Shown here piece after piece: positions 5,439 through 20,667 of a DNA stretch of 64,000 bases. The translations under genes were made by a program, and so were the position numbers. A model generated the notes under the pieces. It ran no database searches. It saw only the letters and a program-made list of their open reading frames with translations, and was not told where the DNA came from. The stretch lies in the sequence record OP557969.1; one strand, written 5' to 3'. The first letter of the stretch is position 1. Each line of letters opens with the position of its first letter.

Positions 5439-5530
5439 GTTTAATAAAGTACTTGCATACTAAGTTAAAACAAGTATAATACTTTCTATCAGGTGGGGAA
5501 TAGTTCCCCACTATATAAGAGGATTAAAAA

Positions 5531-5860: not shown

Positions 5861-6127
5861 ATGAATATTAAGTATTTTGCGACGCGTGAACAAGCTCGGA
5901 AGGCGGCGAAAGTGGAAGGTGCAACGTTTAAAGATATGGGCATACAATCGGAACGTGGTAAACGTTGGGCCATTGTAAAGCGTAGTACAGCCAGATCATT
6001 ACAGTACTGGTTAGCGGCTTTAAAAAGTCCTGCTAGTGTATCGCGTCGAGTGGTAGAAATAAAGCTCGACCGTAAGGGGAATCGTGTTACCGTGTACCGT
6101 ACTAAAAAGATAGCAGTACTTGAATAA
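5861..6127 (+). CDS. early basic protein, paralog of 18547-18942
   Basis: shared KYFATREQAR..A..EGATFKDMG and DRKGNRVTVY. Confidence 0.75.
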   Translation: MNIKYFATREQARKAAKVEGATFKDMGIQSERGKRWAIVKRSTARSLQYWLAALKSPASVSRRVVEIKLDRKGNRVTVYRTKKIAVLE

Positions 6128-6214
6128 AAAGTACTTGCAAACTATGCTTAAAAGCGTATAATACTTTATATCAGGGCGGGGGAATAGTTCCCGCCTATAA
6201 CCGGGAGTAATAAA

Positions 6215-6445
6215 ATGACTAATATGTATATGACTGAAGTTAAAACCGTAAAAGATACTACCACGAATAAAACTACTTACTTACAGCGGATCTGTGGTGT
6301 CTGGCAACGTATCAGCAAATCAAAGTACTTTAAATTAACATCATATGCCAATCGTTCGGATTCATTCAGTACTGAAATAAAAGGTAATAAAGTACACCAA
6401 TACGGCACTTATTATTATTATAGCCTGGACGCGATTGCAGTATAA
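6215..6445 (+). CDS. early hypothetical protein
   Basis: own promoter cassette and GGAG RBS. Confidence 0.75.
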   Translation: MTNMYMTEVKTVKDTTTNKTTYLQRICGVWQRISKSKYFKLTSYANRSDSFSTEIKGNKVHQYGTYYYYSLDAIAV

Positions 6446-6475
6446 GTAGTTTACAAATCTTTACAATTGCCGGTA

Positions 6476-6555
6476 TTGACTTAAAATGTCAGTACTGGCA
6501 TAATGTATTCATTGGCAGATAAGCCGTGGCCCATAGGGTGCGGAAGTGTATCTAT
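6476..6555 (+). ncRNA. motif-1 element with own promoter
   Basis: TTGACT-17-CATAAT, GGC/GCC hairpin, CCCATAGGGTGCGGAAGTGTATCTA. Confidence 0.5.
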
Positions 6556-6586
6556 AGAAAAATTAGTTTAGTACAGTTACAATTGT

Positions 6587-6648
6587 GCACCCTGTGGGTT
6601 AGCTGTTGTCATGGGGTATATTATGCCAGTACTTGATAATGCTGTCAA
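6587..6648 (-). ncRNA. motif-1 element with own promoter, convergent with 6476
   Basis: minus-strand TTGACA...CATAAT, then CCCACAGGGTGC. Confidence 0.5.
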
Positions 6649-6728
6649 TACTTTTTTACTATTCAGTACTGAAAACTATTTGATAAAAAGTACTTGCAAA
6701 CTATGTTTAAAGGCGTATAATGTTTTAC

Positions 6729-6803
6729 ATCAGGACGGGGAACGAAATAAGTAACTTCCCGTTAAGTAGCCCAGGAGTAAGGCATACGAAAAACTCCCCT
6801 GAT
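6729..6803 (+). ncRNA. motif-2 structured RNA, copy 1
   Basis: starts at promoter +1; ATCAGG/CCTGAT closing stem; GGAGT-AAG-N4-ACGAAAA-ACTCC hairpin; no ORF. Confidence 0.6.
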
Positions 6804-6871
6804 AAAATAGTTTGACAATTGTTTTTAAAAGCGTATAATACTTACATCAACTACTGAATGAGGGTTACAAA

Positions 6872-7483
6872 ATGAAAACTATCACTACTACTACTTATGT
6901 TATGGATTTTTCTGAATTGAACGCAGAACAAAAAACGTCAGCTATCGAACTGGTTCGGGAACGTGAAAAAAACTTAAACGACGATTATTTTTCTGAAAGT
7001 GAAATTGAATACTATAAAGAAACAGTACTACCGGAATATGGCATTAATGACGCAGAAATACAATTCAGTGGTTTTTGGTCGCAAGGTGACGGTGCATCAA
7101 TTAGTACTGACCACGTTGACGCAGTGAAGTTTTTACGTAAGGTAAGAGCATTAACTAAGTATCGCTCAATCCGTCACCTGCTGAATGAAGATGATTTGGC
7201 GATGAGTGTAAAGCGTTCTCACTCCCGCTACTCACATGAGAACACTGTAAGCGGGTACATTGAATCGGCTTACACTGATTTAACCGCAAAACAAGAAACG
7301 TTAGTTAATGAGCTTGAGGAACTGCTCACTGATACTATTCGTGAATTGTCACGCAAGTTATACCGTGATTTAGAGAATGCATATGAGGATCAATTCACTA
7401 CTGAAAACATCGTATCACTGATTGAGGGTAACGAATATCAATTCAATGTTATTGATGGCGTAGTAGAATCAATTGCATATTAA
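6872..7483 (+). CDS. conserved phage/plasmid protein (FSGFWSQGDGA family)
   Basis: 203 aa; motif IQFSGFWSQGDGAS; own promoter. Confidence 0.8.
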   Translation: MKTITTTTYVMDFSELNAEQKTSAIELVREREKNLNDDYFSESEIEYYKETVLPEYGINDAEIQFSGFWSQGDGASISTDHVDAVKFLRKVRALTKYRSIRHLLNEDDLAMSVKRSHSRYSHENTVSGYIESAYTDLTAKQETLVNELEELLTDTIRELSRKLYRDLENAYEDQFTTENIVSLIEGNEYQFNVIDGVVESIAY

Positions 7484-7568
7484 AAAGTACTTGCAAACTA
7501 AGTTTAAAAGCGTATAATACTTTATATCGAGGCGGGGAATGGTTCCCCGCTCAAACGAGGATTTAAAA

Positions 7569-7808
7569 ATGGCTAGTACTAAAACTTACAACGGTCACAA
7601 AAACAAAACTCATTGGAATGTTTCCTTATGGATTAATAACGGTGAGTCATTGTATCGGCTTGCTCAAAGTTGCATCGCACAATGTAAAACTAAAGATATT
7701 GCGGCCCAATGTATGTACCGCAGATTAAAAGCCAACGGTACTACTACAACGCCGGACGGATTCAAGTATAGCACTACGGCGATCCGTGCTGCAATGGTTG
7801 GAATGTAA
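7569..7808 (+). CDS. early conserved phage protein (HKNKTHWNVSLWINN family), copy 2
   Basis: duplicate of 5531-5770; start moved to MASTK. Confidence 0.85.
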   Translation: MASTKTYNGHKNKTHWNVSLWINNGESLYRLAQSCIAQCKTKDIAAQCMYRRLKANGTTTTPDGFKYSTTAIRAAMVGM

Positions 7809-7864
7809 CATTCAGTACTGAATCAATGGCGGGTGTGGTTCCCGCCTTTACTGAGGATTATCTA

Positions 7865-8146
7865 ATGAGTAAAGTAATTAACTATACAGTACTAAGCAAG
7901 TCATTATCTATTAGCCAGTGCACCGATGGTTTTTGGCTGTACGATGAAACGCGTGGTATGAATTTAGCTATGCAGGAGAAAACTCCTGATGCGGCATATC
8001 TTAAAGCACTGGAATACTACCAGAAGCGTTTAACGGAAGTAGAAAACAATTATCAGAATCTCAAAGAGAAAGTAGATAATTTCGTTGGTCAATTCGTTGA
8101 CGATGACGAAGGGCACTACTGCGACCGTTGCGGATCTTACAGTTAA
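7865..8146 (+). CDS. early hypothetical protein with C-terminal CxxC
   Basis: GAGGA RBS; coiled-coil segment; YCDRCG. Confidence 0.75.
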   Translation: MSKVINYTVLSKSLSISQCTDGFWLYDETRGMNLAMQEKTPDAAYLKALEYYQKRLTEVENNYQNLKEKVDNFVGQFVDDDEGHYCDRCGSYS

Positions 8147-8163
8147 GTACTAAGGATTATATA

Positions 8164-8367
8164 ATGAGTGATTTAATTGAACGTATCAAAGAGCTTGAAG
8201 AAAAAGAATTACAGCTAATCGGCTTACAGAATAAAATCTATCATGATTTGGGGAGTTTTATCAATGCTTGGGATAGTGGCGATCCTGATGCGTTACCTGC
8301 TAACCGCCAGGCAATGATCAATGATGTGCGTGGTGTCTTTGAGTATGTTTTAAAGCAATTAAATTAA
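8164..8367 (+). CDS. early hypothetical protein
   Basis: AAGGA RBS; start moved to MSDLIER. Confidence 0.7.
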   Translation: MSDLIERIKELEEKELQLIGLQNKIYHDLGSFINAWDSGDPDALPANRQAMINDVRGVFEYVLKQLN

Positions 8368-8454
8368 AAAAGTACTTGCAATTAGTTTTTAGTACTGTAT
8401 AATGTTTTACATAGAGGGGAGAAAATGGTTCTCCCTAGTAAAGAGGAAAATAAA

Positions 8455-8676
8455 ATGGCTAATATTACTACTCTTTCCCAACTTGAAGCACTGGTTAAAT
8501 CTATGCGGGAACATGCCGACAAAATCGGCGTAAAAGATCCAGCCGTTTGCTTTTGTGACGAATTGAATGATGATACATTGGTAATAGCAGAAGTCCAGGA
8601 CGTTTCTAACTATTCATCGCGTTACACTGGCGGCGTAGCAAATAAAGGTGACTTCTGTTTATACCTTACCAAATAA
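8455..8676 (+). CDS. early hypothetical protein
   Basis: promoter cassette, GAGGA RBS. Confidence 0.75.
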   Translation: MANITTLSQLEALVKSMREHADKIGVKDPAVCFCDELNDDTLVIAEVQDVSNYSSRYTGGVANKGDFCLYLTK

Positions 8677-8677
8677 C

Positions 8678-8710
8678 AACGCGGGGAGATAATAACTCCC
8701 CGTTACTTTT
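8678..8710 (+). terminator. intrinsic terminator
   Basis: CGGGGAG/CTCCCCG stem followed by T-run. Confidence 0.6.
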
Positions 8711-8742
8711 TCAGTACTGAATCATTTAATAGACGGATCTAT

Positions 8743-8812
8743 GCACCCGGTGGGTTAGTGACTGTTTCGTCTTGATGTAGTAATTATGCCAGTACTGGAT
8801 GCGGTTGTCAAG
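8743..8812 (-). ncRNA. motif-1 element with own promoter
   Basis: minus-strand TTGACA...CATAAT, GAC/GTC hairpin, CCCACCGGGTGC. Confidence 0.5.
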
Positions 8813-8924
8813 AACTATTTTTCAAATACTTTTTACTAAAGTACTTGCTAATAGTTTTTAAACGCGTATAATGTTTTACATAGCAAGGGGAAACGGTTTC
8901 CCCTGGTAACTAAGGAATAAGAAA

Positions 8925-9161
8925 ATGATCGAACAAATCAAATCAACGTCTGCGAATGTAACGGGAACGGTATCACACTTTACTAGTGATGAATCGCGGG
9001 GCGTACCCTATTGTGCTGTACATGTAAACACTGAGGGTAACTACTGGTTTACGGTTTACGGATCATATTCATTTGGACGGCCAGGGCATCAAAAAATTCT
9101 GGATAAAGTACAGCCAACGGGTAAAAATATCACTGCTGAAATGTTTTATAAAAAATCATAA
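8925..9161 (+). CDS. early hypothetical protein
   Basis: promoter cassette, AAGGA RBS. Confidence 0.75.
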   Translation: MIEQIKSTSANVTGTVSHFTSDESRGVPYCAVHVNTEGNYWFTVYGSYSFGRPGHQKILDKVQPTGKNITAEMFYKKS

Positions 9162-9245
9162 AGTACTTGATAATAGTTTTTAGTATTGTATAATATTTTA
9201 CATCGCAAGGGGGAGCGGTTCCCCCTGGTAACTAAGGATAATAAA

Positions 9246-9545
9246 ATGAAAATTGCAATCATCGCCCTGGCTTTATCTGTTTCCTCTTTCGCTGTTAATG
9301 CGTCATTAGATGTAAGTAGTGAAAAATTCATTCAGTGCACTGTTGCAATGACCGATGAAAGAACTGGCGAGATTGTATTAAAGGATTTAGAGATCCAGCC
9401 GGAAGCATTTAAAAACGGCCCGTTCCATGAAGAAGACGAAAACGGTAGTACAACAATTTATTATGATGCTAGTACTAAACGCGGTTCGGTCACGGTTATG
9501 GATACTGAGAAAGTAACTCATACAGGCGTTATTAATTGCCGTTGA
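9246..9545 (+). CDS. predicted exported protein with signal peptide
   Basis: MKIAIIALALSVSSFAVNA signal-peptide pattern; two Cys. Confidence 0.75.
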   Translation: MKIAIIALALSVSSFAVNASLDVSSEKFIQCTVAMTDERTGEIVLKDLEIQPEAFKNGPFHEEDENGSTTIYYDASTKRGSVTVMDTEKVTHTGVINCR

Positions 9546-9566
9546 TTGATACTACGGGGTAACATC

Positions 9567-9797
9567 ATGACTAAGCGAATAGTTTTACTTAACGCTGGAA
9601 GTACTACACAACTCCTTAACGCCGTGCATTATGATATTGAAACGAGCGTCAATCTTATCAGTACTGTAGTATTGTTGGACACTGGAAAGGTCGCAAATGA
9701 TAAAGCGATTGCAGGTATACTAACGGATCTTAAACCAGGTTGCAGTACTCCAATAACTTTAAATGATAAAGTGTTTAATATTTTACTAACTGATTAA
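9567..9797 (+). CDS. early hypothetical protein
   Basis: GGGG RBS; ends before terminator. Confidence 0.65.
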   Translation: MTKRIVLLNAGSTTQLLNAVHYDIETSVNLISTVVLLDTGKVANDKAIAGILTDLKPGCSTPITLNDKVFNILLTD

Positions 9798-9803
9798 GTA
9801 CAT

Positions 9804-9825
9804 AGCCCACCAGGTGGGCTTTTTT
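9804..9825 (+). terminator. intrinsic terminator
   Basis: AGCCCAC-CAG-GTGGGCT-TTTTT. Confidence 0.85.
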
Positions 9826-9914
9826 GTTTTTGTAGTATTGTAGTACTGAGATACTTTGAAAATAGTTTTAAAAAAGTAGTTGACATTACCGCAAAAAGGC
9901 GTAGAATGTATTAC

Positions 9915-9987
9915 ATCAAGACGGGGAGCACTAAGTAGACCGCCAGTAAGTCGAACGAAAAACTGGACACGTCGAGAAAACTTTGAT
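9915..9987 (+). ncRNA. motif-2 structured RNA, divergent copy 3
   Basis: ATCAAG/CTTTGAT ends; CCAGT-AAG-N4-ACGAAAA-ACTGG hairpin with compensatory changes. Confidence 0.5.
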
Positions 9988-10030
9988 ACACTAATAAACG
10001 TAAACTAAACTTTAATTGAGGATTTATAAA

Positions 10031-10513
10031 ATGGCGAATGTAAAATCATTTCTGAAAGCACTGATTTCCAACGATACTGCTATTGCGGCTGAACTGCTGG
10101 CGGATCTGGATAACGATACCATGAAAGCAGTACGCAACAATTTTAACATTGCGTACAGTGAAGCTAAAGAACTGCAAGCCAAAAAGGTAGCAGAACTGGA
10201 AGAACAGAAAAAAGCCCGTGAAGAAGAACTACAAGCAACGATTGAAAGTATTCAGGCGGCAGTTGCTGGGTTGGATCTGGATGTAGTTGTAGAAATGGCA
10301 CATAAAGCCCTGGCAGTTAAGTACGGGGAAGATAAGCCAGTAGCTAAACCTAAAAAATGGATTCAGGAACGCGTAACGGTTGTTCTTGATAATGGCGAAG
10401 AACATTTAATTCCCGTGCGTGGTAACTGCATTGCGGTAGTTCTGGATGCTATCAAAGAAAGCGGATTGACTCGCGAGGAATGGATCGAAGCTCACCGCAA
10501 AATTGAAGCATAA
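10031..10513 (+). CDS. H-NS/StpA-like protein lacking the QGR AT-hook
   Basis: coiled-coil N-terminal half; C-terminus DNGEEHLIPVRGNCIAVVLDAIKESGLTREEWI parallels H-NS [34 protein letters not shown]. Confidence 0.55.
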   Translation: MANVKSFLKALISNDTAIAAELLADLDNDTMKAVRNNFNIAYSEAKELQAKKVAELEEQKKAREEELQATIESIQAAVAGLDLDVVVEMAHKALAVKYGEDKPVAKPKKWIQERVTVVLDNGEEHLIPVRGNCIAVVLDAIKESGLTREEWIEAHRKIEA

Positions 10514-10534
10514 CAATTAAAGTACTGAATCACT

Positions 10535-10561
10535 AGCCCACTTCTTATAGTGGGCTTTTTT
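10535..10561 (+). terminator. intrinsic terminator
   Basis: AGCCCACT/AGTGGGCT stem and T-run. Confidence 0.85.
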
Positions 10562-10603
10562 GTGTTTATCGTTTACCAGTCCACTAGCACCGCCTAGAGT
10601 CGA

Positions 10604-10684
10604 TTCTAACGCATTAAACTGATTATCTGATGAATAGCCCTAGCTGGTGGCGTTAATGCCGTTAGAACGCGATTGAGGACGTTT
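10604..10684. repeat. palindromic intergenic element (relatives at 4806-4896, 14953-14977)
   Basis: TTCTAACGCATTAA/TTAATGCCGTTAGAA inverted repeat; shared CGTTAGAA..GC..GAGG.CGTTT arm. Confidence 0.55.
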
Positions 10685-10788
10685 AAAGTATTTTGCAAAA
10701 AGTAATAAAAAGTACTTGCACGATTAAGAGATTAGAGTATAATTAATTACATCAAGACAAGACACCTTAACTAACTGAGGATATAAAG

Positions 10789-10941
10789 ATGAATACTTAT
10801 GAACTGGATTGTTTCACTTTACAAGTAATGTCAGTATGCAGTAAAAAAGATTGGTCATCAAAGGAATTTAAAGCAGTTATTGCGTGTGCAAAACACGGCA
10901 AGACTATCAATGAAACGGCATCAATCATTGATAAACTTTAA
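10789..10941 (+). CDS. small early protein (50 aa), paralog of 14732-14875
   Basis: promoter and GAGGA RBS; C...GK...T..II.K. Confidence 0.7.
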   Translation: MNTYELDCFTLQVMSVCSKKDWSSKEFKAVIACAKHGKTINETASIIDKL

Positions 10942-11012
10942 AAAATAGTTTGACAATAGTTTTAAGTACTGCGATAATACATACATCAACTACTGAATAG
11001 GAATAAAAAACA

Positions 11013-11240
11013 ATGGCTATCGTAATCACTCGCGTAACTGGTACTACTGGCACTGCTTCAACTGTTGCTGTAATTACTAATAAGAAAGGTGCAGAATTAC
11101 ATTTTGCAATGGATAAATGGGCCGTTAATGAGTTTGGTCAGTGGGCAAGTGTAGAATACATTGAAACCTATCAAGTGCCATCGATTAGCTTAACTGATTT
11201 AGGTGTAGAACGTATCCTTTGCCTGGATGAATTAAATTAA
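11013..11240 (+). CDS. early hypothetical protein
   Basis: own promoter, AGGA RBS. Confidence 0.75.
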   Translation: MAIVITRVTGTTGTASTVAVITNKKGAELHFAMDKWAVNEFGQWASVEYIETYQVPSISLTDLGVERILCLDELN

Positions 11241-11326
11241 AAAAGTACTTGCAAAGTAAATCAAATAAAGTATAATACATTACATCAAGGGGAGAAAATG
11301 GTTCTCCCCACTAAGAGGAAACTAAT

Positions 11327-11470
11327 ATGAAAACTTGTCAATGTGGTAAAAAATCTATTACGGGTTTGAAACGGGGCGTTGCACTTTGCCAGTATCATTA
11401 TAATGCTCAAGTATGGGGTAAAGAATGGGCCGACCAGGTGGAAGCAGCAAAGAAAGCAAAAAGTAAGTAA
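11327..11470 (+). CDS. small putative zinc-binding protein (47 aa)
   Basis: promoter cassette, GAGGA RBS; CQC...CQYH. Confidence 0.7.
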   Translation: MKTCQCGKKSITGLKRGVALCQYHYNAQVWGKEWADQVEAAKKAKSK

Positions 11471-11551
11471 AAATATTATCACAGTACTATTGACATAGAT
11501 TGATAGTACTGGCATAATAGATTTTATCAAGACAACTAAGAGGAAATTAAA

Positions 11552-11896
11552 ATGGCTAACATCAATACTATAGCAGCACAAAATATCAACCTGTCTTCTG
11601 TTGAAGTTGTACACATTGCCGCCCGGCGTTGGTTCCAGGCGTCTTATGGTAATACTTATTTCTCTTTAACGGTAGATGTTGAAATCAATGGCGAATTTAT
11701 TGAAGTAGTAAACGTGCCGTTCCAATATGGCTACGGGGATCATTTTGACACTGTAGCAATGGAAGAATTTAGCAAGGTTATTAATATGGAAGGTAAAGAG
11801 TTTTTACGCGGTTCTTATCTTTCCCGTTTTTGCCGTGATAATAATATTACTGTTTATAGTTCTGTTAGTGATGTTAAACGCAAAAAAGATCTTTAA
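11552..11896 (+). CDS. early conserved phage protein, paralog of 18128-18451
   Basis: RW...GNTY.S...F.YGYG...DVKRKKD. Confidence 0.8.
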   Translation: MANINTIAAQNINLSSVEVVHIAARRWFQASYGNTYFSLTVDVEINGEFIEVVNVPFQYGYGDHFDTVAMEEFSKVINMEGKEFLRGSYLSRFCRDNNITVYSSVSDVKRKKDL

Positions 11897-11976
11897 TTAG
11901 CTTTACTTTATGCAGATACTTTGATATAGTGTCTGCATAGGGGAAAGAAATTAAATCAACTTAAGAGGATAGTAAA

Positions 11977-12246
11977 ATGAAAAATATCAGTACTTTAATC
12001 GATGCAGGTACACATGTTCGTCGGTCTATGGTTGCAACCAGTTCTACAAAACAAGTAGCGAGCGGTTATCTTGTATTTGTGCACGATGGTAAACTCCTGG
12101 AACGTTCAATCAATTTTGATGTTAAAAACAATTGCCGTTTTATTATCTTTCGCCGTGAACAATATAAGATCGACATTCCAGCGAAGCCCATTAGCGGGGC
12201 GTACAACGTGCAATCATTGTTTGAGCGTCAACCATACACCTATTAA
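11977..12246 (+). CDS. early hypothetical protein
   Basis: GAGGA RBS. Confidence 0.7.
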   Translation: MKNISTLIDAGTHVRRSMVATSSTKQVASGYLVFVHDGKLLERSINFDVKNNCRFIIFRREQYKIDIPAKPISGAYNVQSLFERQPYTY

Positions 12247-12297
12247 TCAAAACAACGTTAGCGGTCGATTTAGGCCGCTTATACTGGGGATTATATA

Positions 12298-12570
12298 ATG
12301 AATACTAATCAAGTACTGAACGAGATTGAAAGCATCATTAAACCGATGAAGCGTACTGATGCAATGTTAACACCGGAAGAATGCCGCTTATATGAGCGTT
12401 ACAGCGTCGAACAAGTACAGGAAATGGCTATGGCTATCCCTGCCGTTCAACAGCCTGAGAACGCAGTACAGGACGTTACAGGGGATTATAACATCAATCC
12501 AGTACTAGGGAAGATTACACCAATTACCGAAGAACAAAAAGACTACTTAAGCCAGTACTTAAAAGGTTAA
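12298..12570 (+). CDS. early hypothetical protein
   Basis: GGGGA RBS. Confidence 0.7.
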   Translation: MNTNQVLNEIESIIKPMKRTDAMLTPEECRLYERYSVEQVQEMAMAIPAVQQPENAVQDVTGDYNINPVLGKITPITEEQKDYLSQYLKG

Positions 12571-12575
12571 TTAAT

Positions 12576-12785
12576 ATGCTTACTGTACAGGATAAGATCG
12601 ACATCTTAAAGGTTAATATGTATGTGATTGATGCCGTACCTGGTAAAGTATTTGCATACGATGACACCACTGTAAGCAATTTCTACTATAGCCAGGAAGT
12701 GGGGGATCTTTCTGTACAGTCGGTTATTGAAAACGTAGTTAATGCAGCGTATGAGCATTTACTTTCAAATAGTACTTGCAATTAG
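12576..12785 (+). CDS. early hypothetical protein
   Basis: coupled to upstream ORF. Confidence 0.7.
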   Translation: MLTVQDKIDILKVNMYVIDAVPGKVFAYDDTTVSNFYYSQEVGDLSVQSVIENVVNAAYEHLLSNSTCN

Positions 12786-12853
12786 TTTTTAAACGCGTAT
12801 AATGTTTTACATGAAGGGGAGAAATAGTACTCCCACTAATTAAGGAATAGTAA

Positions 12854-13000
12854 ATGAAAGCATCAAAAAAGAGTACTAACAAGAAAGCACGTTCAACTTT
12901 AGATGGGGTATTCCCTTTGCGTTTTGTGGATGAAGTAGTTTCCTACCCGCTGGGCCTTACTCCTGAGATGGTAGAAAGTTTGCGTAAATCTAAAAAATAG
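12854..13000 (+). CDS. small basic early protein (48 aa)
   Basis: promoter cassette, AAGGA RBS; MKASKKSTNKKARSTLDG... Confidence 0.65.
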   Translation: MKASKKSTNKKARSTLDGVFPLRFVDEVVSYPLGLTPEMVESLRKSKK

Positions 13001-13081
13001 TACTTGCAATTAGTTTTTAGTACTGTATAATGTTTTACATGAAGGGGAGAAATGATTCTCCCCAAGAACAGGAGAAACAAA

Positions 13082-13234
13082 ATGAAACAATACAACGCTC
13101 GGTTTGATGTTACTATCGGCAACGGCAAAGGTCAATTCTCTTTCAGTACTCGTAAGAGTTATACAGAAAACTTCTTGCGTAATTGTGCACTGACCGCCGC
13201 ACAAATTAAACATTATTTTCAGGCTAAAAAATGA
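13082..13234 (+). CDS. small early protein
   Basis: promoter cassette, AGGAG RBS; start moved to MKQYNARF. Confidence 0.7.
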   Translation: MKQYNARFDVTIGNGKGQFSFSTRKSYTENFLRNCALTAAQIKHYFQAKK

Positions 13235-13320
13235 AATCATTAGCTTATTATAGTTCGGCCCTGGTCGGTGCATTGATCGCGGCATTGTTAGTAGCTTATC
13301 TATTCTTTATGGTGATTTAA
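13231..13320 (+). CDS. 29-aa single-pass membrane peptide
   Basis: ATGA coupling; MKSLAYYSSALVGALIAALLVAYLFFMVI. Confidence 0.55.
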   Translation: MKSLAYYSSALVGALIAALLVAYLFFMVI

Positions 13321-13458
13321 ATGAATCCTAACGGTATAATTTACAGTACTCCTAAAACGAAAGCAGATAAAGCCAAAGCACGTAAAGCGAAAGTAAAGGA
13401 GTACATCAAGCAAGGCATGACACGAAAGGCGGCAGTACTGAAAGCTAAAAATAAATGA
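13321..13458 (+). CDS. 45-aa Lys/Ala-rich basic protein
   Basis: MNPNGIIYSTPKTKADKAKARKAKVKEYIKQGMTRKAAVLKAKNK. Confidence 0.55.
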   Translation: MNPNGIIYSTPKTKADKAKARKAKVKEYIKQGMTRKAAVLKAKNK

Positions 13459-13459
13459 A

Positions 13460-13496
13460 AAAAGTGGTTGACTTCGGTCAGCCATTTTGCTATTAT
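13460..13496 (+). promoter_or_regulatory. composite terminator hairpin / extended -10 promoter
   Basis: AAAAGTGGTTGAC-TTCG-GTCAGCCATTTT hairpin containing TTGACT-17-(TGC)TATTAT. Confidence 0.7.
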
Positions 13497-13499
13497 ATA

Positions 13500-13548
13500 T
13501 TCATTGAGAGATAGCTCACTAGCCCACGGGGTGCGGGAGTGTATCTAT
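13500..13548 (+). ncRNA. motif-1 element
   Basis: TGAG/CTCA hairpin, then CCCACGGGGTGCGGGAGTGTATCTA. Confidence 0.5.
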
Positions 13549-13678
13549 TATATAAGCATTGAGTACTGAAAACTATTTTAAAAGTATTTGTAGAAAGTAC
13601 TTGCAAACTATCTCAATAGGCGTATAATGTTTTACATCAAGGGGGAAACGGTTTCCCCTAGTAATAAGGAATAAAATC

Positions 13679-14020
13679 ATGACTATTGCAATTGTACAAT
13701 CTAACTTTGAAAACGAAATCATCGCCCAAGCACTGCGTTTAAATGATGGTCGGGCCGAAATTAATTACGGTTTCAATTCAGGCGGTTGTGAAAAATATCA
13801 GTACTTTATAACTGCTGATGGCGGTGTCCTGGGTATTAATACAGTTATTGTAAACATTCAGAAAATTAATTTCAATGATCCAGACGATAGCCAGTTTTAC
13901 ATTATAGGCGTAGACGTGAACTATGAGGATGACTCACTAACTGATGATTACACTGGCGAGAAGTTAGAAAGTGCATACGGTGAAGATGATTATCAGTCAG
14001 TACCGGAAGATTTTGAATAA
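13679..14020 (+). CDS. conserved acidic phage protein (GG...YFITADGGVL...DVNYED...ESAYG family)
   Basis: motifs as named; promoter cassette. Confidence 0.8.
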   Translation: MTIAIVQSNFENEIIAQALRLNDGRAEINYGFNSGGCEKYQYFITADGGVLGINTVIVNIQKINFNDPDDSQFYIIGVDVNYEDDSLTDDYTGEKLESAYGEDDYQSVPEDFE

Positions 14021-14143
14021 TATTAAAAAATAGTTTGACAATAGATTATAGTACTGTATAATATTTTACATGAAGGGCAACGGGAAGTTTTTAAAACTTC
14101 CCTATAGGGAGAATAGTTCTCCCACTAACAGAGAGAAAACAAA

Positions 14144-14356
14144 ATGGCTAATATCTGCACTGTACTGAAAAATGCAAAACAAGTTTTATTTTCTGATCAC
14201 GATCATTTAAACAAGGATATTACTGGCGTTCGGAATATCAAAGATGTAAAAAGTGTTATGGGCATCTATTGCAATATGAAACGTGTTGGAACGTTCGGTA
14301 ATAAATTTCTATACCAAGCGGGGGATTACAATTTTACACTGACTATCATTAACTAA
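14144..14356 (+). CDS. early hypothetical protein
   Basis: promoter with double hairpin leader. Confidence 0.75.
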   Translation: MANICTVLKNAKQVLFSDHDHLNKDITGVRNIKDVKSVMGIYCNMKRVGTFGNKFLYQAGDYNFTLTIIN

Positions 14357-14438
14357 AAATATTATCACAGTACTATTGACATAGATTGATAGTACTGGCA
14401 TAATAGATTTTATCAATTACACTACTAAGGAATTAAAA

Positions 14439-14618
14439 ATGGCTATCATCGCAAAAACTGAAATCATCGGCCTGGATTCTATCATCATGACGTTTGAAGA
14501 TCAAAAAGGTATGTATGTAGTTTCCTATGGTGATTATGTTCGGGAGTATGAAACGGTAGACGAAGCCTTTGAAAGTTACATTCGCCAGGTGAATAAAGCA
14601 TACGACGATTACCGCTAA
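14439..14618 (+). CDS. small early protein (59 aa)
   Basis: promoter, AAGGA RBS; MAIIAKTEIIGLDS... Confidence 0.7.
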   Translation: MAIIAKTEIIGLDSIIMTFEDQKGMYVVSYGDYVREYETVDEAFESYIRQVNKAYDDYR

Positions 14619-14731
14619 AATATATTACCAGTACTATTAAAGATATTGACAACGTTTGATAGTACTGGCATAATAAGTTTTATAAACAGTAGTCAAATAG
14701 TAGTTAACTTAACAAAAGAGAGAGAAACAAA

Positions 14732-14875
14732 ATGATCGCACTGGATTCATTCATCGATGCAGTTCTGGCAAAAACTGGCGAGGATCTGACCGCAGAACAA
14801 TACGCGATGATCGAGCAATGCCAGCAAGACGGTAAATCGGTGAAAGATACTGTTAAGATTATCCGCAAGATGTAA
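14732..14875 (+). CDS. small early protein (47 aa), paralog of 10789-10941
   Basis: GAGAG RBS; QCQQDGKSVKDTVKIIRKM. Confidence 0.7.
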   Translation: MIALDSFIDAVLAKTGEDLTAEQYAMIEQCQQDGKSVKDTVKIIRKM

Positions 14876-14881
14876 GATTAT

Positions 14882-14910
14882 AAGCCCATTAGTTAACGCT
14901 GGTGGGCTTT
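14882..14910 (+). terminator. intrinsic terminator
   Basis: AAGCCCATTAG/CTGGTGGGCTTT stem. Confidence 0.65.
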
Positions 14911-14975
14911 AATCATTTACCCTATACAATGCCAGTACTAAACCGTTTATCTCGTTAGAATGCATTACAGGACGT

Positions 14976-15179
14976 TTGACAATGATTAGCATGAAATCAG
15001 TACAAAAACAAATAGAAACATTATCAAAAATTAAACGTAAACAGTACTCATTAGAATATAATATCAATGGTAACTATCATCTAATGAAAGAGAATAATTT
15101 TATCGTCATTGATGAATCATTGCAAATTATTAGTATAGTACTGAAAGCATTAATTAATGATAGAAAAAGGTTAAAATAA
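14976..15179 (+). CDS. hypothetical protein
   Basis: ORF coupled to the TraR-like gene; start uncertain. Confidence 0.5.
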   Translation: MTMISMKSVQKQIETLSKIKRKQYSLEYNINGNYHLMKENNFIVIDESLQIISIVLKALINDRKRLK

Positions 15180-15436
15180 TGGCAGTAGGATTCGCGAAAG
15201 ATGGAGCCGAGCAAGATGAGATTAACGCAGTTATTCAAGCCGCCGTTAACCACGCTAGAAAGCAAATTAACGCACAAATAGAATCACTGATACATTGCCT
15301 CGACTGCGGCGATAAAATCCCTGAGAATCGCCGACAGGCTGTTAAGGGTTGTAAGTACTGCATAACTTGCCAGGAGGATCATGATAGTACTTTTAAACGT
15401 CCCCCGCGTAATTGTTGGCATAGATCTATGAGATAA
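15179..15436 (+). CDS. traR: DksA/TraR-family C4 zinc-finger protein
   Basis: CLDCGDKIPENRRQAVKGCKYCITCQ = CxxC-IPxxRR-CxxC; acidic N-terminal helix. Confidence 0.9.
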   Translation: MAVGFAKDGAEQDEINAVIQAAVNHARKQINAQIESLIHCLDCGDKIPENRRQAVKGCKYCITCQEDHDSTFKRPPRNCWHRSMR

Positions 15437-15500
15437 AAAGTAATTGACAGTACTGAAAGATAGTGTATAATGTTTTATATCTTAACTGAGGATAGAAATC

Positions 15501-15857
15501 ATGGGAATACAACATATCACGCGGACCACTGACAATGGCGAGATCACTGGTTATCAAGTACAGGGCAAAGTAGCACAATTGCAGTACTGGTTTGTTAAAC
15601 GTGGAATCATTGCACCGGATCTTGATTATGACCGTGTAGCGTTTATTGATTCTCTTTATGTTGATCCTGATAGTCGGGGCAATGGTGAAGGTAACGAATT
15701 AATGAATGCCTTTATTGATGCCGCCGATGATTCAGATTGTATCATCTTAGAATGCGATACGGGAGAAGATAACGCCTTTAATCTTAAAGAATGGTACGAA
15801 GGTTTCGGATTCGAGGTATTGATAGATAGTGAATATCCTATCATGATTTTATCATAG
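15501..15857 (+). CDS. GNAT-family acetyltransferase
   Basis: IDSLYVDPDSRGNGEGNELM (motif A) and WYEGFGF. Confidence 0.85.
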   Translation: MGIQHITRTTDNGEITGYQVQGKVAQLQYWFVKRGIIAPDLDYDRVAFIDSLYVDPDSRGNGEGNELMNAFIDAADDSDCIILECDTGEDNAFNLKEWYEGFGFEVLIDSEYPIMILS

Positions 15858-15936
15858 TACTTGCATTTAGTTTTCAGTACTGTTATAGTACTTGCATCAA
15901 GGGGAAACATCTTCCCCTACTAAGAGGAAATAAAAA

Positions 15937-16125
15937 ATGGAAAACTTATCAAGTATTTTAGTACAAGATGATTTCGGTAATCCTGGAAGTGCTATCATTG
16001 TTCGGGGCAATAAAGCAACGTTTGTTATTGCTGGTGGACCCGTACAGCGTAGCATTAAAAATAATGCTGTTACCATTAATAATGTACGCTATCGCTTAGA
16101 TAAAGAATTAATTCATAAACTGTAA
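15937..16125 (+). CDS. early hypothetical protein
   Basis: promoter cassette, GAGGA RBS. Confidence 0.7.
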   Translation: MENLSSILVQDDFGNPGSAIIVRGNKATFVIAGGPVQRSIKNNAVTINNVRYRLDKELIHKL

Positions 16126-16152
16126 TATTAATTTAATAGAGGATAACAATAA

Positions 16153-16476
16153 ATGTACATTCATACTACTGTCACAAAGGAAGTCCGTTGCCAGTTCGAA
16201 AGTATTCCGGGCGTATGTTTCATCACTGGTACGTTTTCCCCTGGTGATCGTGATAATCCAGTACTGTTACAGTTACGCCATCCATTATGGGATAAAGCAT
16301 TTGATCTGCCGTTGAATGAATTCGCAACCACTGCTGATAAGTACATTAAAAATATTCGCGAGAATGATTGCCTATTCATTAATGCTTTTAGTGATGCCGC
16401 GTTAAGTGAGATCCATGCTGTATTGGTTGCAATCATGGAATCAATGGAGAAAACTATATTCAAACAAGGTGAATAA
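16153..16476 (+). CDS. early hypothetical protein
   Basis: GAGGA RBS. Confidence 0.75.
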   Translation: MYIHTTVTKEVRCQFESIPGVCFITGTFSPGDRDNPVLLQLRHPLWDKAFDLPLNEFATTADKYIKNIRENDCLFINAFSDAALSEIHAVLVAIMESMEKTIFKQGE

Positions 16477-16559
16477 AAACTATTGACAATGCAATCCAGT
16501 ACTGTATAATAGTTTACATGAAGGGGAGAAATGATTCTCCCCACTAAGAGGAAAGAAAA

Positions 16560-16772
16560 ATGCAAGGTCAACTAATCGTTCGTAAATGGTCTGATACTAA
16601 CGAAAAACCGTGGGATGTACAATACATCGCCCCAAATGGTGAATCCAGATATCAACCAGGTGTAACGCATAGTACTGAGCAATTCGCCGCCGCTCATCGC
16701 GAACGTCTGTTACAATCAATGCAGCACGGTTCCGGTGAAAAATTCATTCAGGATCATTGGCTGAAAGATTAA
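16560..16772 (+). CDS. early hypothetical protein
   Basis: promoter cassette, GAGGA RBS. Confidence 0.75.
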   Translation: MQGQLIVRKWSDTNEKPWDVQYIAPNGESRYQPGVTHSTEQFAAAHRERLLQSMQHGSGEKFIQDHWLKD

Positions 16773-16858
16773 AAAGTACTTGCACAGTACTGAATAAAGT
16801 GTATAATGTTTTATATCGGAAGGGGAATAGTTCCCCTCCTAACAAAGAGGAAAGTATA

Positions 16859-17032
16859 ATGGTCCAGGTAGAATTAACAGTACTGAAAGATCTGTTTTAT
16901 CGGATTGGTACTACTGGCGAATATCCGAAGGGTGATAATGCAAAACTTTACGTATCACTCGACTTATGGCAACGCGAACAATTAGCAACGGCCTGGCGTA
17001 AAGGCAAAGCAGATAGCGAGGTGAAAGCATGA
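16859..17032 (+). CDS. small early protein
   Basis: promoter cassette; start moved to MVQVELT. Confidence 0.7.
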   Translation: MVQVELTVLKDLFYRIGTTGEYPKGDNAKLYVSLDLWQREQLATAWRKGKADSEVKA

Positions 17033-17178
17033 AAGAATTCTTATTTGAAGTAGTGTTTCAAGGTGTCGGTAATAACCAACTGATTCGATCAAGTGGTTAT
17101 AATGTTAACCAGGCATGGAATAACATTAAACAAATGTACCCTAACGCTATCACATATCGCAACCCGAAAGAAGTTTAA
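17029..17178 (+). CDS. small early protein (49 aa)
   Basis: GAGG RBS, ATGA coupling; MKEFLFEVVFQG... Confidence 0.65.
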   Translation: MKEFLFEVVFQGVGNNQLIRSSGYNVNQAWNNIKQMYPNAITYRNPKEV

Positions 17179-17188
17179 AAATATTTGA

Positions 17189-17272
17189 AAAAGGGATTGA
17201 CTCCGGTCAGTCCCTTTGCTATTATATACGCATAGAAACAAATCAGCCCACAGGGTGCATAAATGTATCTAT
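17189..17272 (+). ncRNA. terminator/promoter composite followed by motif-1 element
   Basis: AAAGGGATTGAC-TCCG-GTCAGTCCCTTT, TATTAT, then CCCACAGGGTGCATAAATGTATCTA. Confidence 0.5.
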
Positions 17273-17351
17273 TGTTTGCTGGTGGCTAGTACTGAAAACT
17301 ATTTTTAAAAAAGTACTTGCATTGTACTTAGAATCAAGTATAATGTTTTAC

Positions 17352-17424
17352 ATCAGGACGGGGAACGAAATAAGTAACCCCGTTAAGTAGTCCAGGAGTA
17401 AGACATACGAAAAACTCCCCTGAT
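17352..17424 (+). ncRNA. motif-2 structured RNA, copy 2
   Basis: near-identical to 6729-6803, at promoter +1. Confidence 0.6.
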
Positions 17425-17493
17425 AAAATAGTTTGACAATAGAAAGTAAACGAGTATAATACTTACATCAACCACTGATAAGGAAACATTAAA

Positions 17494-17769
17494 ATGCGGA
17501 CTTTACTTACAGCTAACGAAATCGAGCAAGTACTGACTACTAATCTGGAACAATGGAAACGTGAAGCAGATATCCAGGCGGTTCAATGCCTTAACGATAA
17601 GTTAACGCCAGATGACTTAAGCACGATTGTTGATCCACAATTTTATGAAGATATTCACGACACGTCTTTAAGCGTCGAGGATGTACTTGATAAGCACTAC
17701 ATTGATACTGATTTACATGTTTACGGTCGTAAAAACTTTATCACTATTCACGACATTTACAATACTTAA
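17494..17769 (+). CDS. early acidic hypothetical protein
   Basis: promoter, AAGGA RBS. Confidence 0.75.
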   Translation: MRTLLTANEIEQVLTTNLEQWKREADIQAVQCLNDKLTPDDLSTIVDPQFYEDIHDTSLSVEDVLDKHYIDTDLHVYGRKNFITIHDIYNT

Positions 17770-17857
17770 GTATTGACAAAGTATCTTAGTACTGTATAAT
17801 AGTTTACATCAAGTGAGGGGAAACGGTTCCCCTCCTAACAAAGAGAGAGAAATTAAA

Positions 17858-18040
17858 ATGGCTAAGTGCACTATCTGTAAGAAAGAAATCGTATTAGTTC
17901 CAAGTGCCCGTGAACGTGCCGCTCGGTTCGGTGGCAAAGCGTCAGACTATACAAAAATGTTTACTGCCCATGCAGCTTGTCAAGTAGCAAAACGTTCACA
18001 AGAAAGCGTAGAATTAATGCGTAAACTTTCCAAAAAATAA
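17858..18040 (+). CDS. small zinc-binding protein
   Basis: CTIC...HAAC; start moved to MAKC. Confidence 0.75.
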   Translation: MAKCTICKKEIVLVPSARERAARFGGKASDYTKMFTAHAACQVAKRSQESVELMRKLSKK

Positions 18041-20458: not shown

Positions 20459-20546
20459 AAAGGGATTGACTCCGGTCAGTCCCTTTGCTATTATATATCC
20501 ATTGAGAGATAACTCACTGACCCATAGGGTGCGGAAGTGTATCTAT
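20459..20546 (+). ncRNA. terminator/promoter composite followed by motif-1 element
   Basis: same hairpin-promoter as 17189; CCCATAGGGTGCGGAAGTGTATCTA. Confidence 0.5.
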
Positions 20547-20667
20547 TATATAAGTATTCAGTACTGAAAACTATTTTTAAAAAAGTACTTGCATTGTACT
20601 TAGAATCAAGTATAATGTTTTATATCGAGAGGGGGAATGGTTCTCCCTGGCAATAAGGAATAAAATC

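Follow-up and report, generated by a model that had tools for sequence, protein, structure and literature searches.

Three short, similar sequences at early promoters of a jumbo coliphage raise the question of whether these promoters begin their transcripts with a conserved folded RNA, how far such an RNA extends beyond this phage, and what it does there. They lie in a 64,000-nucleotide (nt) stretch of sequence record OP557969.1 (hereafter, the window), and a preliminary description, made from the letters alone, had presented them as copies of a structured RNA motif. Our comparisons indicate that the motif is a new class of phage RNA with >500 members, including one in phage T7, and with a predicted fold that is well supported by covariation. 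It is a phage RNA of ~65–75 nt, which host RNA polymerase makes from the first bases of strong early promoters. The window belongs to Asteriusvirus (Rak2-like jumbo coliphages): bases 6000–18000 are collinear with Escherichia phage ph0011, an Asteriusvirus and Rak2-like jumbo myovirus of ~348 kb, at the same coordinates and with 99.6% identity.

Sequence, alignment, and a core covariance model all bear out the three copies (Table 1). The model, built from homologues and run on the window with filters off, matched only these copies (56.6–58.5 bits; next match 9.2 bits), and the pattern AGTAAG-N4-ACGAAAAACT has exactly three perfect matches in the 64 kb, with no other close one. This pattern and the other shared words, ACGGGGA and TAAGTAG, stand where they had been reported. 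A strong sigma-70 promoter precedes each copy, and all three copies begin 7 nt past the −10 hexamer with ATCRRG; the T7 A1 promoter has the same spacing and initial bases (ATCGAG, annotated start 498), which supports the earlier placement of the copies at +1. The new promoters described right behind copies 1 and 2 are also there, each a perfect match. Folded on their own, copies 1 and 2 take the proposed shape (z −1.9 and −3.0, respectively), and the minimum free energy (MFE) fold of copy 3 is weak (z −0.3).

Table 1 Motif copies in the window, their parts, and the promoters, genes, and terminators around them.
Feature	Position	Strand	Details
Promoter P1 of copy 1	6694–6721	+	TTGCAA-16-TATAAT; promoter scan; inferred start 6729
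Motif copy 1	6729–6803	+	MFE fold; covariance model match 57.1 bits; pair counts
Copy 1, P0	6729–6734 with 6798–6803		
Copy 1, P1 hairpin	6735–6762		
Copy 1, UAAGUAG	6763–6769		
Copy 1, PK2	G6769–C6771 with G6781–C6783		
Copy 1, P2	6774–6778 with 6793–6797		
Copy 1, A-rich L3	6784–6792		
Second promoter behind copy 1	6812–6839	+	TTGACA-16-TATAAT; promoter scan; leader without the usual 5′ hairpin
Gene behind copy 1	6872–7483		Reached by the leader of promoter 6812–6839
Terminator-like hairpin	9804–9828	+	Hairpin resembling an intrinsic terminator, with a T run; lies before the copy 3 unit
Promoter P1 of copy 3	9880–9907	+	TTGACA-16-TAGAAT; promoter scan; inferred start 9915
Motif copy 3	9915–9987	+	Covariance model match 56.6 bits; duplex test; without P1 hairpin
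Copy 3, P0 outer	9915–9920 with 9981–9987		
Copy 3, P0 inner	9920–9923 with 9970–9973		GACG with CGTC
Copy 3, UAAGUAG	9932–9938		
Copy 3, PK2	G9938–C9940 with G9950–C9952		
Copy 3, P2	9943–9947 with 9962–9966		
Decayed second promoter behind copy 3	9983–10011	+	TTGATA-17-TAAACT; aligns with the second promoters of copies 1 and 2
160-aa gene	10031–10513	+	Led by copy 3; coiled-coil N-terminal part, weakly H-NS-like C-terminal part
Terminator behind 160-aa gene	10535–10556		
Promoter P1 of copy 2	17317–17344	+	TTGCAT-16-TATAAT; inferred start 17352
Motif copy 2	17352–17424	+	Fold z −2.99; covariance model match 58.5 bits
Copy 2, P0	17352–17357 with 17419–17424		
Copy 2, P1 hairpin	17358–17383		
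Copy 2, UAAGUAG	17384–17390		
Copy 2, PK2	G17390–C17392 with G17402–C17404		
Copy 2, P2	17395–17399 with 17414–17418		
Second promoter behind copy 2	17433–17460	+	TTGACA-16-TATAAT; leads to the 91-aa gene
91-aa gene	17494–17769		

The homologues share a core, UAAGUA-GNC-(A)G-[P2 5′ strand]-(A)UAA-GNC-NNACGAAAAA-[P2 3′ strand]. Covariation supports an H-type pseudoknot in this core, with stem S1 formed by the two GNC triplets and S2 by the 4–5-bp hairpin P2. Its invariant unpaired parts are UAAGUA and (A)UAA, and its third strand is the conserved A-rich ACGAAAAA. Among 25 distinct sequences, the three inner pairs of P2 (CG:20/GC:5, CG:19/GC:5/UA:1, and UA:13/AU:11/UG:1) are 100% paired, without a single unpaired cell, and each has 5–11 double changes. 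When the partner strand is slid by one column, pairing drops from 96% to ~31%, and the observed covariation score is reached by 0/500 shuffles. The stem flip that had first suggested selection on RNA structure, from GGAGT/ACTCC in copies 1 and 2 to CCAGT/ACTGG in copy 3, is real, and homologue alignments, in which the pairing might have broken, retain it; with the double changes in P2 and two more covarying helices, selection on RNA pairing is the reading that these data favor. The AGT/ACT stem described earlier was kept in homologues as a hairpin, except for its innermost T-A pair, which is lost in relatives (ACGAAAACCTCC in 121Q, EJP2, and A73); the solid stem is therefore 4 bp. One homologue (L182, CMSTMSU, an UNVERIFIED_ORG record) has a P2 that is one base shorter on each strand (GAGU/ACUC versus GGAGU/ACUCC), a compensated shortening.

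The S1 helix (PK2, 3 bp) joins the GNC that ends UAAGUAG-N-C to the GNC in the P2 loop. Its flanking G-C and C-G pairs are invariant, and its middle pair varies among the 25 sequences (AU:16, UA:5, CG:3), with one exception, C/A in EmilieFrey; the window alone holds C-G (copy 1), U-A (copy 2), and A-U (copy 3). When IMG/VR was searched for cases with a base other than A after TAAGTAG, leaving the partner free, 8/8 matches were complementary (7 U-A and 1 C-G); they came from Asteriusvirus, K1F-like contigs, and a further podophage lineage. The UC/GA mini-hairpin that RNAfold places in the P2 loop was dropped for PK2, given that its U covaries with the base after UAAGUAG and not with the A.

The same kind of evidence shows a third predicted helix that would clamp the core, formed by the tail after P2 and an upstream segment (P0 or PK1). 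In the T7-like clamp, PK1, 5–6 nt located 2 nt past P2 pair with a loop that is presented upstream by hairpin P1 (CCGG-loop-CCGG and variants). Complementary sets include GUCAA/UUGAC (T7), GAUUAG/CUAAUC, GUCAUC/GAUGAC, GUCAC/GUGAC, GCUAA/UUAGC, GUCAAG/CUUGAC, and GUCGGU/ACCGAC. Across 22 sequences, five of the six pairs changed on both sides, and 0/500 shuffles reach the score. Where a tail of the K1F type drifted from TTGACA, the P1 loop changed along with it. The clamp of the jumbo phages and two podophage contigs is P0, in which the same tail pairs with the first bases of the transcript. This is the end pairing first described for the window (AUCAGG/CCUGAU in copies 1 and 2, AUCAAG/CUUUGAU in copy 3), to which an inner GACG/CGUC is added in copy 3. 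Other forms are AUCAA/UUGAU (EJP2), CGGC/GCCG (Munch), CGGC/GUCG (L174), CAUC..CGG/CCG..GAUG (Hallingskeid), AUG..CGG/CCG..CAU (L161), and ACCGAA or AUCGAA with UUUCGGU (L208 and L207). Free-energy folding recovered P0 in 7/8 further representatives, its duplex energies are better than those of most shuffles in each of nine subtypes, and RNAalifold returned P1 and P2 for the P1-bearing jumbo-phage forms.

The covariance and sequence searches place the element far outside the window phage. Using copies 1 and 2 as blastn queries, we found 45 phage records from Asteriusvirus and from the unrelated 142–146-kb Justusliebigvirus/Vequintavirinae (muut, outra, EmilieFrey, and A73). Copy 3 also matched T7-like Yersinia phages (at ~553–587) and the Rak2-like phages Munch, 7t3, fENko-Kae01, and Hallingskeid. 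The T7 version found 485 T7-like phage records, one place each, including T7 (540–593), T3, phiYeO3-12, K1F, LIMElight, GAP227, Kc318, and an Aeromonas phage; T7 has it between the early promoters A1 (start 498) and A2 (start 626), with the core at 536–593. Further variants came from IMG/VR and metagenome scans. The motif is always in the sense orientation and 0–40 nt from a sigma-70 start. Nothing in the early non-coding region of 45 distinct T7-like sequences is as well conserved as the block that runs from UAAGUAG through the 3′ end of P2, which in this respect exceeds even the A1 and A2 promoter hexamers (−35 and −10), with the caveat that these loci were gathered using patterns that fix part of this block. 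We found the motif in no bacterial chromosome: blastn gave no match in 5,426 E. coli genomes, and 185,579 bacterial species genomes (one each) gave 15 pattern matches, of which the model recognized a single real one (L191). This 2,728-nt contig (CAXYYW010000111.1, binned as an ‘uncultured bacterium’ metagenome-assembled genome) has a top-scoring T7-like motif (65 bits) and is probably a mis-binned phage fragment. A loose pattern, TAAGTAG-N8-30-ACGAAAAA, matched at least 118 stretches in IMG/VR, and none of the 78 on which the model was run (L030–L107) scored.

The genes that follow the motif bear on what it might act on. Copy 2 belongs to a module of promoter, motif, promoter, and 91-aa gene (94.5% protein identity) that is shared with Justusliebigvirus muut (window 17317–17769 versus L143 2960–3418; muut-type genomes are 146 kb), and outra and EmilieFrey have a different gene than muut behind the same promoter-motif-promoter module. 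This sharing points to a putative recent horizontal exchange of early-gene cassettes between jumbo Asteriusvirus and Justusliebigvirus. Copy 3 does lead the 160-aa gene, as had been proposed; the name ‘H-NS-like’ fared less well, given that this gene has no Pfam match at E ≤0.1 and that a profile of three homologues matches the H-NS C-terminal domain weakly (2l93_A, E = 0.38; 1hnr_A, E = 1.1; over 38 residues). Pfam gave no significant family for any of five genes downstream of the motif. Homologues of the 160-aa gene stand directly behind the motif in Munch (E 1.6e-15) and Hallingskeid, and the second motif copy of EJP2 precedes a gene with a similar N-terminus. This early protein family is kept behind the motif in three divergent Rak2-like lineages (L144:3783–4370; L145:12167–12793).

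The recurrence of one gene family behind Asteriusvirus copy 3 and the motifs of Munch, Hallingskeid, and EJP2, together with the 5′ leader position and the aptamer-like pseudoknot core, would suit a cis riboswitch or a protein-operated switch of the downstream promoter or gene, such as autoregulation of the H-NS-like gene. We regard such a switch as improbable: the element has no expression platform (neither a linked terminator nor a helix sequestering a Shine-Dalgarno sequence, and its tail is not a Shine-Dalgarno sequence), downstream genes vary between copies and phages, the first T7 gene is ~330 nt and two promoters away, and no riboswitch model matches. No phage gene accompanies the motif everywhere. 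Because unrelated phage groups share the element while the downstream gene varies (muut versus outra), its partner is expected to be host-encoded or a small molecule.

Tentatively, we favor a co-transcriptional leader element that acts in cis on host RNA polymerase or its elongation factors. The motif RNA would fold while leaving the polymerase and, still attached or adjacent, would act on the transcribing enzyme or its factors, resulting in more processive early transcription (anti-pausing, anti-termination, or anti-Rho); the invariant unpaired nucleotides would form the contact surface for a conserved enterobacterial partner. This proposal is made because known RNA elements at exactly this position (nut, put, and boxA) do so, because T7-like early regions resemble rrn operons in having tandem strong promoters, boxA, and RNase III sites, and because the motif in contigs L207 and L208 stands in the place of boxB before boxA. 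In T7, the motif follows A1, the first major early promoter. Perfect rrn-type boxA sequences (GCTCTTTAACAA) are found in T7-like leaders 60–380 nt downstream of the motif, with boxA sites at ~815 in T7 (L146), in GAP227 and Kc318 (L150/L151), and at L207:4166–4177 and L208:928–940. L207 and L208 have the order promoter, motif, 12–25 nt, boxA, first gene, without a second promoter, so the motif, directly before boxA, occupies the boxB place of an rrn leader. In both contigs, boxA is followed by a boxC-like UCUGUG.

Several observations weigh against action on the polymerase. Transcripts from T7 A2 and A3 face the same road, yet only A1 transcripts carry the motif, and in the window it is present at 3 of the 25 early starts matched by regular expression. 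Two of the three window copies are at once followed by a strong promoter without the motif, and the units behind the copies are short (0.6–3 kb) and end at good terminators, so there is no evident need for read-through. No GCTCTTTAACAA-like boxA with fewer than two mismatches occurs in the window, and the boxA count there is at chance level. Neither sequence nor model comparison links the motif to the immunity region of phage HK022, the source of put, and a fold of this kind, an H-type pseudoknot whose third strand is A-rich, is also characteristic of small aptamers that bind ligands.

Read as such an aptamer, the motif might instead work in trans. An abundant leader RNA of the first minute would then be a decoy or sponge that titrates either a small signalling molecule or a conserved host protein (a nuclease, a silencing factor, or a regulator that binds RNA), in effect an RNA-only takeover or anti-defence device. 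This is possible, if doubtful. The motif places its invariant unpaired nucleotides in a pseudoknot with an A-rich strand, as small aptamers do; very strong promoters drive it; and copies 1 and 2 are ‘stand-alone’ units, behind which the next gene has its own new promoter. Unrelated phages also share the element within a single host group (Enterobacterales plus Aeromonas), and in three jumbo-phage lineages it is linked to the H-NS-like gene (by its weak profile match). However, the element is followed by no terminator or processing site that would set a 3′ end, it forms just one portion of the mRNA leader in L207 and L208, and the absence of matches in the E. coli genomes argues against host mimicry.

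A different role is suggested by the other early transcripts of the window. Its early region consists of short + strand genes, mostly each with its own strong sigma-70 promoter, and AUMRRG (M = A/C, R = A/G) followed by a G+C-rich hairpin, RGGGGAA-loop-UUCCCCY, opens at least 15 early transcripts within its first 24 kb. This design is found at 5488, 6170, 7526, 8411, 11284, 13636, 17808, and 18079, and further at 20624, 20928, 21419, 21965, 22301, 22942, and 23811; AUMRRG resembles the T7 A1 start AUCGAG. The hairpin has a loop of 3/5 nt and −11 to −16 kcal/mol, is followed by a Shine-Dalgarno sequence, and is probably a standard 5′ stabilizer. In copies 1 and 2, ACGGGGA...UCCCGU is a large-loop variant of this hairpin, and their motif-specific part is everything 3′ of it. 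The motif could therefore be an RNA stabilizer, a compact knot that hides the 5′ triphosphate, blocks 5′-end-dependent RNase E, and prolongs the life of early mRNA. The jumbo-phage form has its first six bases paired in P0, nearly all other early transcripts of the phage start with a simple G+C-rich hairpin at the same place, and the motif's P1 hairpin is a variant of it. This role is nevertheless unlikely, given that a plain hairpin suffices at the other promoters, that a barrier needs no strict conservation of ~20 unpaired nucleotides across distant phages, and that ~40 nt of RNA, with another hairpin in it, precede the T7-like element.

Most copies lie between tandem promoters, and the A tract and tail of the T7 copy reach into the A2 promoter, over its UP region and −35 hexamer. 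The conserved sequence might therefore act as DNA, serving the second promoter as an UP element or regulator site, or might be just a duplicated promoter module that has no function as RNA. We give this very little credence. Spacing to the following −35 hexamer is not constant (0 nt in T7, 8 in the window, 9 in K1F, ~35 in LIMElight, and ~45 in Munch), and for this reason the UP element explanation was rejected. L207 and L208 lack any second promoter, which also breaks a ‘tandem promoter’ rule, and it is complementarity, not sequence, that is conserved in three helices.

Other features of the early region were noted beside the motif. Another type of leader, AUCAACYACUGAWWRGG, lacks a 5′ hairpin and occurs at 6846, 10985, and 17467, that is, at the promoters directly behind copies 1 and 2 and at one other promoter. 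A near-perfect 28-nt hairpin (AAAGGGATTGACTCCGGTCAGTCCCTTT) is repeated three times (13461–13488, 17190–17217, and 20459–20486); each overlaps a promoter-like TTGACT-17-TATTAT, and one lies ~135 nt upstream of copy 2. A scan for tRNA and tmRNA genes had no match. In some Asteriusvirus records (vB_Ec-M-J, G17, BF17, and others), the loci of copies 1 and 3 are inside annotated direct terminal repeats and are found twice as often per record. The packaged genome therefore probably has copies 1 and 3 within its terminal repeat, near the end, as T7 has its copy.

T7 is among the best-studied viruses, and its A1 promoter with the initial transcribed region is a standard template of transcription biochemistry; a conserved double-pseudoknot RNA in the A1 leader, also present in unrelated jumbo and rV5-like coliphages, was apparently overlooked. 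In the searchable literature, the sequence, as DNA or RNA, appears only as the T7 A1 transcription template; older T7 papers fall outside this search. It is close to an even chance, slightly on the lower side, that this new class has a biochemical activity of its own in the first seconds of infection, either as a put-like RNA, structurally unrelated to put, that reprograms E. coli RNA polymerase with no protein involved or as the first aptamer or sponge with which lytic phages (T7 included) neutralize a conserved host factor or signalling molecule. Action on RNA polymerase would make it a second protein-free RNA regulator of elongation, with consequences for the many experiments that rely on T7 A1 templates; a role as decoy would bring RNA-only host takeover or anti-defence into view for lytic phages. 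In either case, Rfam would gain a new family with >500 members, and function is directly testable in T7 and E. coli K-12.

Compared to known families, the element stands apart, as the preliminary description had suspected when it recognized no ribozyme or riboswitch. Rfam 15 (4227 models) had 0 matches in the 64-kb window at the gathering threshold, and at E ≤10 the element alone gave noise (RT-7, 8 bits; PepN thermometer, 12.6 bits) and no riboswitch or ribozyme model. Among ribozymes, the element invites comparison with pistol, in which a hairpin loop forms a 5–6-bp pseudoknot with a downstream strand and a purine-rich linker follows the hairpin. In the T7-like form, too, the loop of a hairpin is paired to a strand farther downstream, with UAAGUAG coming after the hairpin, an arrangement similar to the P1-pseudoknot-UAAAUAG of pistol. 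A self-cleaving ribozyme that trims the leader is all the same very improbable: the helix order is unlike that of pistol, with a closed hairpin between linker and pseudoknot strand, no ribozyme model matches, and mapping done long ago found the triphosphate ends of T7 A1 leader RNAs intact. A hammerhead-like CUGAU...CGAAA in T7 is not kept in the jumbo-phage copies. A type III antitoxin RNA (ToxI-like) was rejected, the copies being 3.1 and 7.4 kb apart, each with its own promoter, and not a tandem array; so was a three-frame stop-codon block or leader peptide, because by inspection there is no start codon and only two frames are stopped.

The pseudoknot core resembles small H-type aptamers (preQ1-I, SAM-II, guanidine-III, and fluoride) in its order S1-L1-S2-L2-S1′-A-rich L3-S2′ and core of ~30 nt, whereas it has no Rfam match, no expression platform, and an extra clamping helix. 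The leader pseudoknot of T4 gene 32 mRNA is likewise a phage 5′ leader pseudoknot, which could nucleate protein binding, but it autoregulates one gene, whereas the motif precedes unrelated genes in unrelated phages. Nut-type leaders (lambda boxA-boxB; rrn boxB-boxA-boxC) are, like the motif, leader elements behind strong, often tandem promoters; in contrast to them, the motif is no simple hairpin, implies no N-like protein, and occurs in the window in a jumbo phage without boxA. The motif is not a homologue of HK022 put, a possibility that was rejected for want of sequence or model similarity (the core model, R1, found nothing above 6.4 bits in the immunity region at 24–34 kb of HK022), and its H-type pseudoknot differs from the two stem-loops with triplex of put. 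Even so, it resembles put in design: put, an RNA of ~70 nt that starts at +3 of the PL transcript, binds the β′ zinc-binding domain and works without a phage protein (PMC9378689). Both put (putL and putR) and the motif are multi-helix RNAs of ~70 nt near an early sigma-70 start, with non-canonical tertiary pairing and no associated phage protein, and the partner, host RNA polymerase for put (PMC9378689), is the one proposed here for the motif.

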